A DNA stretch of 58,918 nt from Macrostomum lignano (GCA_002269645.1 NIVC01002940.1:1-58918), one strand, 5' to 3'; counted from the first letter of the stretch, positions 26,831 to 50,702 are shown. The notes: a model not told the origin generated them from the letters alone. A program made the numbers and translations.

Positions 26831-29800
26831 TGTTACTGTCTGTGTGTTTACTTGGACCTTTCGTCGGTTCAGTTGCCGCATTAGCTGGACCTTTCGGTTT
26901 AGGTGGACAGCGTAGGTGGACCACCGAATATTTTTGCTCCAGACAACGTTGAGTGGTTTATAAGGACCACAAAACAGAGCAATGGATGTCAGGAATGAGT
27001 GCCACAAAGCGCAACATTCATCGGCATTCATGTTCAGAAAAAAATGCATTTCAGTTTACATGGACTTTTTGCGATGTCCACCTAAAACGGGTCTAAAAGG
27101 TCCAGCTAAACAAAAATTGTCAATGAAAATTTCTGAATTTGTCTGTTGCAGTCTGTTTCAGTCTGTTTCAGTCTGTTGGCAATTTACCTTTTTACAACAT
27201 CTTTTACGCCAAAAAAGTAATATATTTAATTTCCGTGATCTTATATTTGGCACACACGGCTTTGTTGAGCTTTCTTCAAAGCCTTCCCACGGTTTTGTGC
27301 CCGAAAACTATTCCCATGACGGTTCCTTTGTCGCGTTAGTTGCTGATAGTAGTTTAAATGTATATTGTATCCTATAGGCCTATCGACTTTCCTTCTTTTA
27401 GATTCCTTTTGATATTTGATATTTATAAAAGTGTCGAACCACAATAAGAAATAATCCTGCTGGAGAGTTTCGGCCTTGAGAAGAAGGTTCTGCTCTCAGA
27501 TCCCTGTTTAGGGGTGGGGAAGCACCAAACCAAGCTCAAAGCGAATGTCTGATATTTTTTATTTTAGTTTATCCTGGGTCCCACTAAACACAGTTGCACG
27601 CACATCAAATCGTCTGTTGAGGTCCATGTAAACGAAACTTGAAGCGCACAACACAGTCACACAGACTAGTGCTGCATTGGTTAAGGACTGATTTCGGAGA
27701 GGTGGTAAAAATCGGACCACCCCTACTGGGAATGCCAGCAAATAGGAACAGTCCAAGGGACAGACAGTCCGTCGACTAAACGAGTCAGAGAGGGGCAGAG
27801 CTATAAAAGTGAAAACCTTTGGTCTAGCTAAAACAGGCTTACATGGACCACCTAATTTCTCGGATAGACTGAAAAATTCAACTGAACTGTCAATAGTCAA
27901 TACACGAGGATACAGGAATGTCTCGCAGGAGATATCCCAATAGCACAGAGTCCCGGAGAGGTGCAACAGTAACAGATGTTACATCAAGTGGACTGGATAC
28001 CTAAGGTAAGCATAAAATGAAAAGATTCAATTTAAAAGATTGACTTCCTCGCGTTCTAATTCTCTAGTAAAACCAAGCCTTTGGATTACTACGTAGCTAA
28101 TAAAACAACACACGACTTTTAGATCTAACAATACTTGGAAGCTAGTGAAAAATGTTTTCGACGACGTTTTTAAAAAATTGCATTGAAATTGCAGTAAGTA
28201 CCAAAACGAAGTGTTACTTAGGATGAAAAAATGATAAACTTTATTAACGAGCCTCAATAAGAACCTACTCAATCGAAATTTCAGAAATATGTTTTCCTGC
28301 CAGACCAAAAAGCAAAATCTACCAGGTAAGCAAATCAATGCACATACAACTTAAGCTGGTCCAGCTAACCTACAGACTGCACTGACGCAACTGAGCCAGT
28401 CTGTTGAAGAGCCTCACAGATGGGAGGTGGAATTCAAGTTTAGGAGGTCCAGCTAACCTACAGACTGCACTGAAGCAACTGATCCAGTCTGTTGAAGAGC
28501 CTCACAGATAGGAGGTGGAATTCAAGTTAAGGTGGTCCAGCTAACCTACAGACTGCACTGACACCAATATGCCAGTCTGGTTCAGTAACCTACAGTTGTA
28601 TATGCCAGTCTGTTTCAAAGTCTCAGTAGAATATCCTGAATTCTCGTATAAATGCCAAATTTGACAGGCCCAGTCTGGAGACGGCAAGTCAGCTTTGATG
28701 CAGACGAGTGACGCAAGCAACTCCAGCAAGATATCGACCAAGACTTTAAGACCAAGAGCCATTAAGTCGACTATAGGCTGACACCTCACGTCTGGACACT
28801 TCTAAGAAGTCAGCTGAGGCACCTGAGACGCTGGTCAGTCCGGTGGACAGACGTGTTGCCTCATCGCAGTTCAGTCATAGGACGAGATTGAATCTACTGT
28901 GGTGAGCTTGCTGCAAAGTGTTCAGATTTGGCTTATCCTATTCTAATTGAACTGGTCCAGCTAACCTACAGACTGTACTGACGCCACAGAGCCAGTCTGT
29001 TTTAGAGCCTCACAGATGGGGTGGAATTCAAGTTTAGGTGGTCCAGCTAACCTACAGACTGTACTGACGCAACTGATCCAGTCTGTTTTAGAGCCTCACA
29101 GATAGGAGGTGGAATTCAAGTTTAGCTGGTCCAGCTAACCTACAGACTGCACTGACGCAACTGAGCCAGTCTGTTGAAGAGCCTCACAGATAGGAGGTGG
29201 AATTCAAGTTTAGGTGGTCCAGCTAACCTACAGACTGCACTGACGCAACTGAGCCAGTCTGTTGAAGAGCCTCACAGATAGGAGGTGGAATTCAAGTTTA
29301 GGTGGTCCAGCTAACCTACAGACTGTACTGACACCAATATGCCAGTCTGTTTCAAAGTCTCAGTAGAATATCAGTTGTAAACTGTCAATCCTGAATTCTC
29401 GTATAAATGCCAAATTTGACAGGCCCAGTCTGGAGACGGCAAGTCAGCTTTGATGCAGACGAGTGACGCAAGCAACTCCAGCAAGATATCGACCAAGACT
29501 TTAAGACCAAGAGCCATTAAGTCGACTATAGGCTGACACCTCACGTCTGGACACTTCTAAGAAGTCAGCTGAGGCACCTGAGACGCTGGTCAGTCCGGTG
29601 GACAGACGTGTTGCCTCATCGCAGTTCAGTCATAGGACGAGATTGAATCTACTGTGGTGAGCTTGCTGCAAAGTGTTCAGATTTGGCTTATCCTATTCTA
29701 ATTGAACTGGTCCAGCTAACCTACAGACTGTACTGACGCCACAGAGCCAGTCTGTTTTAGAGCCTCACAGATGGGGTGGAATTCAAGTTTAGGTGGTCCA

Positions 29801-47800: not shown

Positions 47801-50702
47801 TGTGGTGAGCTTGCTGCAAAGTGTTCAGATTTGGCTTATCCTATTCTAATTGAACTGGTCCAGCTAACCTACAGACTGTACTGACGCCACAGAGCCAGTC
47901 TGTTTTAGAGCCTCACAGATGGGGTGGAATTCAAGTTTAGGTGGTCCAGCTAACCTACAGACTGTACTGACGCAACTGATCCAGTCTGTTTTAGAGCCTC
48001 ACAGATAGGAGGTGGAATTCAAGTTTAGGTGGTCCAGCTAACCTACAGACTGCACTGACGCAACTGAGCCAGTCTGTTTTAGAGCCTCACCAATAGGAGG
48101 TGGAATTCAAGTTTAGCTGGTCCAGCTAACCTACAGACTGTACTGACGCAACTGAGCCAGTCTGTTTTAGAGCCTCATAGATGGGGTGGAATTCAAGTTT
48201 AGGAGGTCCAGCTAACCTACAGACTGCACTGACGCCACAGAGCCAGTCTGTTTAAGAGCCTCACAGATAGGAGGTGGAATTCAAGTTTAGGTGGTCCAGC
48301 TAACCTACAGACTGCACTGACACCAATATGCCAGTCTGTTTCAAAGTCTCAGTAGAATATCAGTTGTAAACTGTCAATCCTGAATTCTCGTATAAATGCC
48401 AAATTTGACAGGCCCAGTCTGGAGACGGCAAGTCAGCTTTGATGCAGACGAGTGACGCAAGCAACTCCAGCAAGATATCGACCAAGACTTTAAAGGCCAA
48501 GAGCGATTAGTCGACTATAGGCTGACACCTCACGTCTGGAAACTTCTAAGAAGTCGGCTTAGGCACCTGAGACGCTGGTCAGTCCGGTGGACAGACGTGT
48601 TGCCTCATCGCAGTTCAGTCATAGGACGAGATTGAATCTACTGTGGTGAGCTTGCTGCAAAGTGTTCAGATTTGGCTTATCCTATTCTAATTGAACTGGT
48701 CCAGCTAACCTACAGACTGTACTGACGCCACAGAGCCAGTCTGTTTTAGAGCCTCACAGATGGGGTGGAATTCAAGTTTAGGTGGTCCAGCTAACCTACA
48801 GACTGTACTGACGCAACTGATCCAGTCTGTTTTAGAGCCTCACAGATAGGAGGTGGAATTCAAGTTTAGGTGGTCCAGCTAACCTACAGACTGCACTGAC
48901 GCAACTGAGCCAGTCTGTTTTAGAGCCTCACCAATAGGAGGTGGAATTCAAGTTTAGCTGGTCCAGCTAACCTACAGACTGCACTGACGCAACTGAGCCA
49001 GTCTGTTGAAGAGCCTCACAGATAGGAGGTGGAATTCAAGTTTAGGTGGTCCAGCTAACCTACAGACTGTACTGACACCAATATGCCAGTCTGTTTCAAA
49101 GTCTCAGTAGAATATCAGTTGTAAACTGTCAATCCTGAATTCTCGTATAAATGCCAAATTTGACAGGCCCAGTCTGGAGACGGCAAGTCAGCTTTGATGC
49201 AGACGAGTGACGCAAGCAACTCCAGCAAGATATCGACCAAGACTTTAAAGGCCAAGAGCCATTAGTCGACTATAGGCTGACACCTCACGTCTGGACACTT
49301 CTAAGAAGTCGGCTGAGGCACCTGAGACGCTGGTCAGTCCGGTGGACAGACGTGTTGCCTCATCGCAGTTCAGTCATAGGACGAGATTGAATCTACTGTG
49401 ATGAGCTTGCTGCAAAAGTGTTCAGATTTGGCTTATCCTATTCTAATTGAACTGGTCCAGCTAACCTACAGACTGTACTGACGCCACAGAGCCAGTCTGT
49501 TTTAGAGCCTCATAGATGGGGTGGAATTCAAGTTTAGGAGGTCCAGCTAACCTACAGACTGCACTGACGCCACAGAGCCAGTCTGTTTTAGAGCCTCATA
49601 GATGGGGTGGAATTCAAGTTTAGGTGGTCCAGCTAACCTAGAGACTGCACTGACGCAACTGATCAAGTCTGTTTAAGAGCCCCACAGATAGGAGGTGGAA
49701 TTCAAGTTTAGGTGGTCCAGCTAACCTACAGACTGCACTGACACCAATATGCCAGTCTGTTTCAAAGTCTCAGTAGAATATCAGTTGTAAACTGTCAATC
49801 CTGAATTCTCGTATAAATGCCAAATTTGACAGGCCCAGTCTGGAGACGGCAAGTCAGCTTTGATGCAGACGAGTGACGCAAGCAACTCCGGCAAAATGAA
49901 GACGATTTTTTTGTGCTCAACCGCAAAAGTTTGTTTATGATGATATTGACTGCGACAGCTTGTGGCTTTCTGTGAGATGATTCCGCTATCCGTCGTAACA
50001 TGTCTCGTCCGTCCGGTAAAACTTTTTTCATTTTTCAAAAATTGAATGGAAAGTTTTTTTATTGTAATACGTGAAATTTATTAGGCAAATGTATTTAATA
50101 ATTATATCGTCGTCAATCTACTTGCCTTTTGGCACATATTTGGGACGTTAAGTGCGTTTCTTTAGGTTTATCATTATTCTAGTGAAAAACAAATATGACT
50201 TTTTGCTATTTAAACTTTTGCTTGGCCGTTAATTTGCACTTGTAACTATTTTTCTCGGCCTAAAAATTAGTTGCATTTGATTCATTTGTTTTTAATGGGG
50301 ATGATGGTTCTTGAGTCCGGAGCAAACTAGAACTGAATGCATTATTTTCACTTTATTACATATTGTGTATTTGGGACTTCTGTCACGTGACTTTTAGTGT
50401 TGTTTCTCGTGCTTAACAGTACTGGGTCGATAATAATCCCAGTACTCTGCTAAATAAATGATGGTCCACCTAAACGGTGTCTTTTTGAAGGTCCACCTAA
50501 AACAGGTCCGGGCTGGTCCAGCTATCCCAGTTGAAAGTGACATGCAGTTTCCACGAGATGGCTAATCTGCAGGCTAAACTGAAAGACAACCCACGCTAAC
50601 TTTTCGTGTAGAGACAAAAGACACCGGTTTTATAAGGAAACTAGGTGGTCCACCTAATGCATTAACCAAACTCTGGTCCCGCTAAACACACAGACAGCGG
50701 TA
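26831..50702. mobile_element. Putative giant non-autonomous TIR DNA element inserted in a (TCTG)n tract; superfamily unassigned
   Basis: TIR 26836-26858 CTGTCTGTGTGTTTACTTGGACC vs reverse complement of 50675-50697 CTGTCTGTGTGTTTAGCGGGACC (20/23, outer 15 bp identical); clustered GGTCCA(G/C)CTAA-type motifs in both arms; same-orientation (TCTG)n on both sides; no transposase ORF seen. Confidence 0.6.
28352..49888. repeat. 21.5-kb hierarchical satellite: 31 units (last truncated), each 2-5 full ~88-bp monomers plus a ~400-bp constant part
   Basis: Unit periods cluster at ~580, ~667, ~755 and 841 bp, steps of one monomer (GGTCCAGCTAACCTACAGACTGCACTGACGCAACTGAGCCAGTCTGTTGAAGAGCCTCACAGATAGGAGGTGGAATTCAAGTTTAGGT); units nearly identical. 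Confidence 0.97.

Follow-up and report, generated by a model that had tools for sequence, protein, structure and literature searches.

Positions 26831-50702 (23,872 bp) of a 58,918-nucleotide stretch of the genome of the flatworm Macrostomum lignano (GCA_002269645.1 NIVC01002940.1:1-58918; this whole stretch is "the window" below) hold a long satellite array between two arms, with short inverted repeats at the outer ends and a TCTG microsatellite on either side. The account that we prefer, at a probability of about 0.5, is that this is a non-autonomous class II transposon, of the cut-and-paste type with terminal inverted repeats (TIRs) and of unassigned superfamily, whose internal satellite was amplified in place. 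The evidence for this comes from its termini, from the architecture of a short motif that recurs throughout it, from its non-coding nature, and from the internal structure of the array. Here, "the element" means 26836-50697, and the rest of the window amounts to 34.6 kb.

The boundaries are best considered first, with tract and tandem-repeat coordinates taken from Tandem Repeats Finder (TRF). On the left, the flanking (CTGT)n tract occupies 26464-26835 on the plus strand (TRF row 26464-26847, period 4, 96 copies). Its outer, left edge is degenerate and its element-proximal side is pure; the final perfect CTGT unit stops at 26831, GTTA (26832-26835) takes the place of the next unit, and the TIR begins. 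On the right, the element is followed on the plus strand (50698-50767) by the linker CGGTA (50698-50702) and then by a (TGTC)16 tract (TRF row 50703-50767, 16.2 copies). This right tract has the strand and orientation of the left tract, and is inverted with respect to the TIR tip beside it.

Just inside these tracts lie the TIRs, CTGTCTGTGTGTTTACTTGGACC at 26836-26858 on the plus strand, and, at 50675-50697 on the minus strand, a sequence whose reverse complement is CTGTCTGTGTGTTTAGCGGGACC. In local alignment the two are identical at 20 of 23 positions, with bases 1-15 all matching. They are the sole such pair in the window at three mismatches or fewer, where 100 shuffles lead one to expect none. 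Inverted termini of the kind that class II TIR elements carry are therefore present at both boundaries. A second inverted block, GCATTAGCTGGACC at 26878-26891 on the plus strand, pairs with 50647-50660 (13/14, in a global alignment of the termini) and stands ~45-60 nt in from both ends, that is, at a similar distance on each side. The sequences just outside both tracts have no detectable similarity to the element, which places the boundaries at the TIRs. Thus, the original prediction, which had a (TCTG)n tract stopping and resuming in the same orientation with 23-bp inverted repeats just inside it, was accurate in both respects.

The TIR tips read CTGTCTGT, and their outer 8-11 nt are themselves CTGT repeats. 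The first 8 nt of the left TIR carry on the flanking CTGT tract in phase; the right tip, inverted against its tract, could form an 8-bp hairpin with it, to judge from the sequence. To our knowledge, a terminus beginning 5'-CTGTC fits no canonical terminus of hAT, CACTA, Tc1/mariner, PIF, piggyBac, P or Transib. The right TCTG tract closes with a perfect 12-nt palindrome, TATGCATGCATA (50768-50785).

The second line of evidence is a motif. The left arm (26836-28346, plus strand, 1.5 kb) and the right arm (49898-50697, plus strand, 0.8 kb) contain repeated instances of the 11-bp sequence GGTCCAsCTAA, which is half of a ~17-bp palindrome, TTAGsTGGwCCAsCTAA. At two mismatches or fewer it occurs 18 times in the 2.4 kb of arms and seven times in the other 34.6 kb, those seven all at exactly two mismatches. 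Exact matches in the window number 138 on the plus strand (134 in the array, four in the arms) and one on the minus strand (in the left arm). Each 88-bp monomer of the satellite holds one copy, which lies within the longest invariant stretch of the monomer alignment. The arms and the satellite thus share a motif not found exactly elsewhere in the window, and this makes them parts of one entity.

The motif copies are, further, arranged in mirror image. A motif scan of the left arm places copies on the minus strand at 26848, 26881, 26899 and 26912, and on the plus strand at 27075, 27099, 27577, 27621, 27821 and 27845; the four outermost (26848-26912) are thus all on the minus strand. In the right arm, five of six are on the plus strand, at 50463, 50490, 50515, 50647 and 50675, and these five lie within 240 bp of the end. 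One full palindrome in the right arm, TAGGTGGTCCACCTA at 50641-50657, is an instance of the general motif. Subterminal regions to which transposases bind are usually built in this way, with a short motif arrayed in mirror image behind short TIRs, as in Ac, En/Spm and P-type ends. The left arm also contains a 10-bp mini-repeat, CAGTCTGTTK (27141-27178), which occurs within the satellite monomer as well.

Part of the left arm is folded back on itself. A module carrying two motifs occurs three times, at 26880-26912, inverted at 27072-27110, and at 50481-50524, where it is oriented like 27065-27108. The resulting subterminal foldback (26881-27110, from alignment, blastn and DNA folding) aligns with a score of 40, where shuffled sequences average 19.3 with a standard deviation of 2.5. 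The inverted modules give the first 285 nt (26836-27120) a strong foldback, with a predicted DNA folding energy of -50.3 kcal/mol (z = -5.4). The left arm also carries an internal copy of the right terminus, GGTCCCACTAAACACAG (27577-27593, plus strand), which aligns with the true right terminus at 15 of 16 positions, and a weaker one at 27099-27113. The core they share, GTGTTTANNNGGACC, has four matches where 0.16 are expected: 26844 (plus strand, the left end) and 27099, 27577 and 50675, these three in the right-end orientation. From such an arrangement, 26836 and 27577-27593 could bound a sub-element of 758 bp, and 26836 and 27099-27113 one of 278 bp, either nested in the larger element or alternative to it.

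The interior is a composite tandem array (28347-49897, plus strand), defined by TRF, autocorrelation, parsing and a matrix of spacer identities. Thirty-one blocks of 88-bp monomers alternate with 30 spacers of ~373 bp. The blocks are 206, 294, 382 or 468 bp long and of uniform orientation, with about 135 monomers in all; 29 of the spacers have 372-375 bp and the leftmost 388 bp, and a partial spacer of ~150 bp (49744-49897) closes the array. Unit lengths therefore fall at ~580, 667, 755 and 843 bp, in steps of 88 bp; autocorrelation peaks at 755, 88, 1335, 667, 580 and 2002, and a higher-order pattern of ~2.0 kb (755+580+667) is seen. The array breaks off within a spacer: 49778-49897 shares 98% identity with the spacers of the array, and unique right-arm sequence begins at 49898. 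It is, in short, a long head-to-tail run of near-identical units (30 units of ~580-840 bp), which is what the terms satellite and macrosatellite denote.

How it came to be so long is suggested by its edge. Among the 29 regular spacers, identity is 96-100% and two subtypes can be told apart, whereas the first spacer (28564-28951, plus strand, 388 bp) is 84-87% identical to the other 29. Near-identical inner spacers, a diverged edge spacer and length steps of one monomer together argue for growth in place by unequal exchange. The array has thus been amplified where it sits, within an element that presumably arrived with a handful of repeats. The original prediction had an interior about 90% satellite, and here the amount was right (21,397 of 23,872 bp, with ~10.2 kb of monomers and ~11.2 kb of spacers); the kind was not, for this is a composite of 88-bp monomers and a 373-bp spacer and not a simple satellite. 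Its description of the element as carrying a macrosatellite holds for the large array inside, and overstates the matter where it implies that the array travelled as cargo.

Neither arms nor repeat unit appear to encode anything. The longest stop-to-stop frame in the arms has 139 amino acids. Frames of at least 45 amino acids from the arms and the repeat unit have no match in Pfam, and this includes any gene for a tyrosine recombinase; the arm and unit frames, joined as a chimeric query, matched none of 5.8 billion proteins; and exact-protein look-ups of the window's open reading frames (ORFs) returned no record. The prediction that no transposase would be visible was borne out. The view of the locus as one non-autonomous element is supported by the inverted termini, the motif shared by arms and satellite, and the lack of coding capacity. 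Rfam gave nothing at the gathering threshold across the whole window and nothing at E<=1 in 26800-30500, and no tRNA was found in the arms or the repeat unit. An array of spliced-leader (SL) RNA, 5S or tRNA genes was rejected as a candidate, as no Rfam or tRNA model matched.

One might, of course, ask whether anything here ever moved. The array might be a resident macrosatellite whose flanks carry palindromes bound by a host protein, or its form might be in part an artefact of assembly. A single copy is seen, the satellite core and the arm reading frames match nothing in the public collections searched, and a 21-kb array of units 96-100% identical is difficult to assemble. However, inverted termini stand exactly at both tract boundaries, with a second mirrored block behind them, and the arms are not decayed satellite: nhmmer searches with monomer and spacer profiles found nothing in them. 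Nor would a chimeric join yield arms that share a motif on both sides. That shared motif makes an assembly join between two unrelated TCTG tracts, the alternative that the original prediction had offered for its own refutation, very unlikely, and the genuine inverted termini argue against it too. We therefore hold an immobile or artefactual origin to be improbable.

If the element is a transposon, its history might have run as follows. A transposase supplied in trans would bind GGTCCAsCTAA, or the 17-bp palindrome, in the two subterminal regions where the motif is oppositely oriented. It would bring the 23-bp TIRs into synapsis and place the element into a TCTG-type site, which the tips resemble. 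On arrival, the element is predicted to have held a few 88-bp repeats, each with one binding palindrome. Later, unequal crossing-over or replication slippage would have grown the pair of monomer block and 373-bp spacer to 31 blocks and 21.4 kb. At such a size, the element is probably immobile now.

The place of the TCTG tracts in this history is a separate question. Outside the element, TCTG/CAGA tract makes up ~2.7% of the window, in four places by TRF (1347-1649, 24221-24423, 26464-26847 and 50703-50767), and some 2.7% of random single insertions into this window would hit one of these tracts. Each end of the element adjoins a tract within 5 bp. With about one tract per 9-12 kb, the chance of two independent coincidences of an end with a tract is, on a rough estimate, ~1e-5. 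The ends and the tract are thus linked non-randomly, and the identity of the tip and tract motifs makes the association look real; the cause could run in either direction.

One direction has the element seeking the tract. That the two flanking tracts agree in orientation speaks for insertion into a tract, or at least into a site like TCTG. Here, a flatworm TIR family whose tips mimic (TCTG)n would home into TCTG tracts, and the satellite, built of the family's own binding palindromes, would serve as a sink or platform for its transposase. CENP-B boxes in centromeric satellite provide a loose parallel to an array in the role of a transposase platform. A preference for TCTG tracts would here be read from one insertion, and we regard this fuller scheme as tentative and rather unlikely.

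The other direction has the same transposon without any targeting. Because the TIR tips are themselves CTGT repeats, the tracts could have been seeded by the element, growing after insertion from the tips, from a short duplicated TCTG-like target, or from both. The left TIR runs in phase with the left tract, and growth of this kind has a precedent in maize TAFTA, where TA targets of 6-8 bp lengthen, once an element has inserted, to (TA)50 on either side of it, according to work cited in PMC5907723. Together, the in-phase junction and that precedent favour growth from the element or its duplicated target. Repeats are, moreover, plentiful in this DNA: in M. lignano, simple and tandem repeats make up 15% of the genome (PMC5730564), and TRF assigns ~24% of the window outside the element to tandem repeat. 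However, GTTA interrupts the junction of left tract and TIR, and on the right (TGTC)16 is on the wrong strand to stem from the tip ACAGACAG, with CGGTA between the two; the right tract would therefore have to come from a duplicated target. Growth without targeting seems to us possible, if on the unlikely side.

A second TCTG-type tract stands beside a tandem array elsewhere in the window, at 23851-24423, where a 21-bp satellite (17 copies) adjoins (ACAG)51. No TIR-like sequence or motif was found at the borders of that pair.

Relatives were sought in sequence collections with a TIR pattern of 20 specified bases and a 22-mer from the satellite core. The 22-mer had no match in metagenome and viral contigs, and the TIR pattern none in prokaryotic genomes and viral contigs. 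In metagenomes, the pattern matched five contigs, 96-100% identical to one another, that represent one locus (L003-L007, respectively Ga0056130_1045768, Ga0056129_1038122, Ga0209680_1087377, Ga0056114_1038212 and Ga0209787_1005812). Here, CTGTCTGTGTGTTTAGTTGGACC, which agrees with the left TIR at 22 of 23 positions, comes after a CTGT/CTCT-type tract. Some 115 nt beyond it lies ATT-ACCAAAC-AGTCCCACTACAC, whose alignment to the right end of the window's element (50661-50687 and inward) outscores that of 98-99% of shuffles and of all but 1/232 to 5/464 chunks of real DNA (p about 0.01). Past this right-end-like stretch is an ACAG/ACAT/AGAG-like tract, inverted with respect to the left one. L007 contains a second exact 13-mer, which proved allele-specific, and a six-frame query with the candidate ~150-bp miniature inverted-repeat transposable element (MITE) found no protein matches. 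The locus is AT-rich and apparently eukaryotic, and the tetranucleotide tract beside its TIR-like sequence differs in length among the five samples.

About one chance match of the TIR pattern would, on an unverified estimate, be expected in a collection of that size, and the locus is therefore treated as a possible relative, at perhaps even odds. Were it real, paired ends would recur elsewhere with minimal cargo, which would support a mobile family. Its two mutually inverted tracts, in turn, are what growth from the TIR tips would produce, and would favour seeding by the tips.

The expectation of a chance match is one of several points that weigh against the transposon as we have drawn it. The tracts of the metagenomic relative are inverted, not direct as in the window. 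A target-site duplication (TSD) is unreadable, as had been foreseen, since the flanks are one tetranucleotide repeat; with boundaries of GTTA/CTGT on the left and ACAG/CGGTA on the right, the most that the linkers GTTA and CGGTA leave room for is a degenerate 4-bp GKTA or a TA. Of the 15 perfectly paired TIR bases, 11 are microsatellite-like, and those on the left are in phase with the tract, which makes the outer TIR boundary uncertain. Three right-end-like copies (27099, 27577 and 50675) mean that the locus may be pieced together from fragments of a family and not be one element. The length of the array comes from a single assembly, and the element is known from one copy, which lends no support to its being mobile or multi-copy, and none to an autonomous partner or an empty site. 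Two M. lignano loci with a related sodium channel gene (L001 and L002) gave neither synteny nor an empty site: they align to the window solely in the coding sequence of that gene (74-81% nucleotide identity), and have neither the motif nor TCTG tracts. The motif and TIR strings, sought in full-text literature, met unrelated primer matches only.

Tracts of equal orientation and an unreadable TSD would also follow from recombination in place of a DDE transposase. Here, the agent would be a Crypton-like tyrosine recombinase, or else a circle of satellite and arm would have been reinserted through CTGT microhomology. The tip of the element is the repeat of its target, and the motif is palindromic, as recombinase sites are. 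Cryptons, too, recombine a short terminal sequence with a near-identical target and leave no TSD (PMC3212892, PMC9977147), and some CryptonV families have been reported as microsatellite-specific in work cited in PMC8869645. However, Cryptons encode a recombinase and have no TIRs (PMC3212892), whereas this element has 23-bp TIRs, mirrored arrays of subterminal motifs, and no recombinase gene. It thus lacks what defines a Crypton, and the short direct repeats at its termini are trivially supplied by the tract. We give this route little credence.

A different reading moves the boundary itself. In a Helentron-derived element (of the HINE/DINE-1 type), the (CTGT)n tract would be an internal microsatellite, and the true 5' end would lie upstream of 26464. 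In the oyster element Cg_HINE, a GTCY/GTCK tetranucleotide microsatellite closes the left flank; a variable segment and a tandem-repeat array come next, and last a right flank with a subterminal inverted repeat (subTIR) and a palindrome (PMC7492417), and the layout of clam DTC84 is similar (PMC3879986). Here, (CTGT)96 stands upstream of an array and a palindrome lies at 50641-50657. DINE-1 (PMC4067079) and the pearl elements (PMC3879986) share with these, and with the element in the window, a non-coding nature, short inverted repeats, a tetranucleotide tract of the GTCY/GTCK type and a central satellite-like array.

The likeness fails, however, in the details. A HINE has one microsatellite, inside the element, and short arrays, with subTIRs and a 3' palindrome, whereas here tracts lie outside 23-bp TIRs on both sides, the TIRs being inside the tracts, and the HINE plan has no place for a right-hand tract oriented like the left one. 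No upstream module was seen to pair with the right arm: the best inverted match of 26164-26463 to it scores 20, where shuffles average 19.5, although a subTIR of 10-12 bp could escape such a comparison. The sole palindrome comes before the terminal repeat and is one more case of the general motif, and a terminal hairpin is absent. DTC84 has a conserved putative AA target duplication (PMC3879986), and no TT or AA insertion context is seen at the boundaries here. On these grounds the HINE plan found no support, and a Helentron origin seems very improbable.

Parallels to a TIR transposon in a microsatellite come from plants. SaTar and Micron (guayule, rice; PMC5907723) and Ac-mMITE (pineapple; PMC8449440) are microsatellite-targeting, non-coding Mutator-like MITEs, and those papers cite MuTAnT and TAFTA as further plant examples. 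Like them, the flatworm element, in its one known copy, is a non-coding TIR element with one microsatellite on both flanks and an unreadable TSD. They differ from it in that they lie mostly in (TA)n, and it in (TCTG)n; in that they have 0.4-1.9 kb, are often clustered end to end, and are described without a large internal satellite (PMC5907723, PMC8449440); and in that their superfamily is known (Mutator-like, with a 9-10-bp TSD), whereas the element in the window has neither a readable TSD nor a transposase.

For the satellite, the parallel is Tetris of Drosophila virilis. This, too, is a TIR element of the non-autonomous kind; its internal tandem repeats gave rise to satellite arrays of kilobase size, and its autonomous partner is not known (PMC4079207). 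Tetris has 220-bp repeats within long TIRs, of the foldback kind, whereas the monomers here run in one orientation between short TIRs; an association with microsatellites is not among the features given in its abstract. A foldback plan, as in FB or Tetris, was rejected for this element, as its monomers all run one way, its TIRs are short, and its local foldback is confined to the left arm.

The precedent offered by the original prediction, Dada-CA on (CA)n, did not turn up. In PMC3706591 and PMC8869645, as searched by term, Dada elements target small-RNA genes (snRNA and tRNA), and microsatellites are mentioned for other elements only. Dada does resemble the window's element in one respect: a short inverted repeat near its ends is identical to its target sequence, and its authors suggest a part in target recognition (PMC3706591), which may be compared with the TCTG-like tips. 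It differs in its 6-7-bp TSDs, in having no true TIRs, and in encoding its own transposase (PMC3706591, PMC8869645). Better precedents are, among plants, SaTar/Micron, MuTAnT and Ac-mMITE and, among cnidarians, CryptonV. As microsatellite-targeting MITEs and satellite-carrying transposons have both been described, the ingredients of the element are all of known kinds, and to call it an undescribed system, as was proposed, is too strong.

The rest of the window is itself rich in repeats. At 1143-1649, (TGTCTCAG)26 is followed by (TCTG)76, starting right after a GT site that resembles a splice donor; ~600 bp beyond (TCTG)76, a 36-bp satellite fills 2249-6467 (118 copies, 4.2 kb). The splice-donor-like site, and the exon-like sequence between the two arrays, make these large arrays appear intronic. 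Tandem repeats of 33-41 nt (also with a period of 74) at 7594-7750 contain GGATTCGAACCCGGG, the reverse complement of a sequence like a tRNA T-arm or B box; they may be derived from a tRNA or a SINE, and ARAGORN finds no intact tRNA in them.

Genes and a retrotransposon are also present. On the minus strand, 8967-14307 is a non-LTR retrotransposon with an ORF1-like frame of 525 amino acids, an ORF for an APE endonuclease and reverse transcriptase (762 amino acids) and an RNase H frame of 484 amino acids. A frameshift in this copy is probable, as the reverse transcriptase and RNase H parts use different frames (overlapping at 10418-10421). The retrotransposon lies between a minisatellite of 15 bp (8440-8730) and a repeat of 10/30 bp (14932-15116). 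On the plus strand, 18257-20398 is an intronless ORF for a 713-amino-acid amiloride-sensitive sodium channel (ASC/ENaC-type, Pfam ASC) with a glutamine-rich tail, whose only strong database relative is M. lignano BOX15_Mlig015178g3 (60% amino acid identity). Last, a 321-amino-acid ORF on the minus strand (53608-54573) has no Pfam match and is broken by (AGT)22, which encodes a long run of tyrosine; beside it are a (CAACCAAC)45 tract and a nested 16-bp/161-bp repeat (53209-53570, 55349-56083).

As it stands, the element is one well-structured case of a link already known to exist between transposons and satellites, from a genus whose genomes abound in tandem repeats. Should other copies confirm it, a single locus would combine ends that resemble their landing site, a satellite born of transposase-binding repeats, and rapid growth of that satellite to 21 kb. 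The 17-bp palindrome would then be a concrete lead to the enzyme that mobilises it. If its family does home into TCTG tracts, the microsatellite-targeting MITEs of plants would have in it their first animal counterpart, one specific for a tetranucleotide, and microsatellite-targeted transposition, described from plants and (TA)n, would reach a tetranucleotide tract in an animal.

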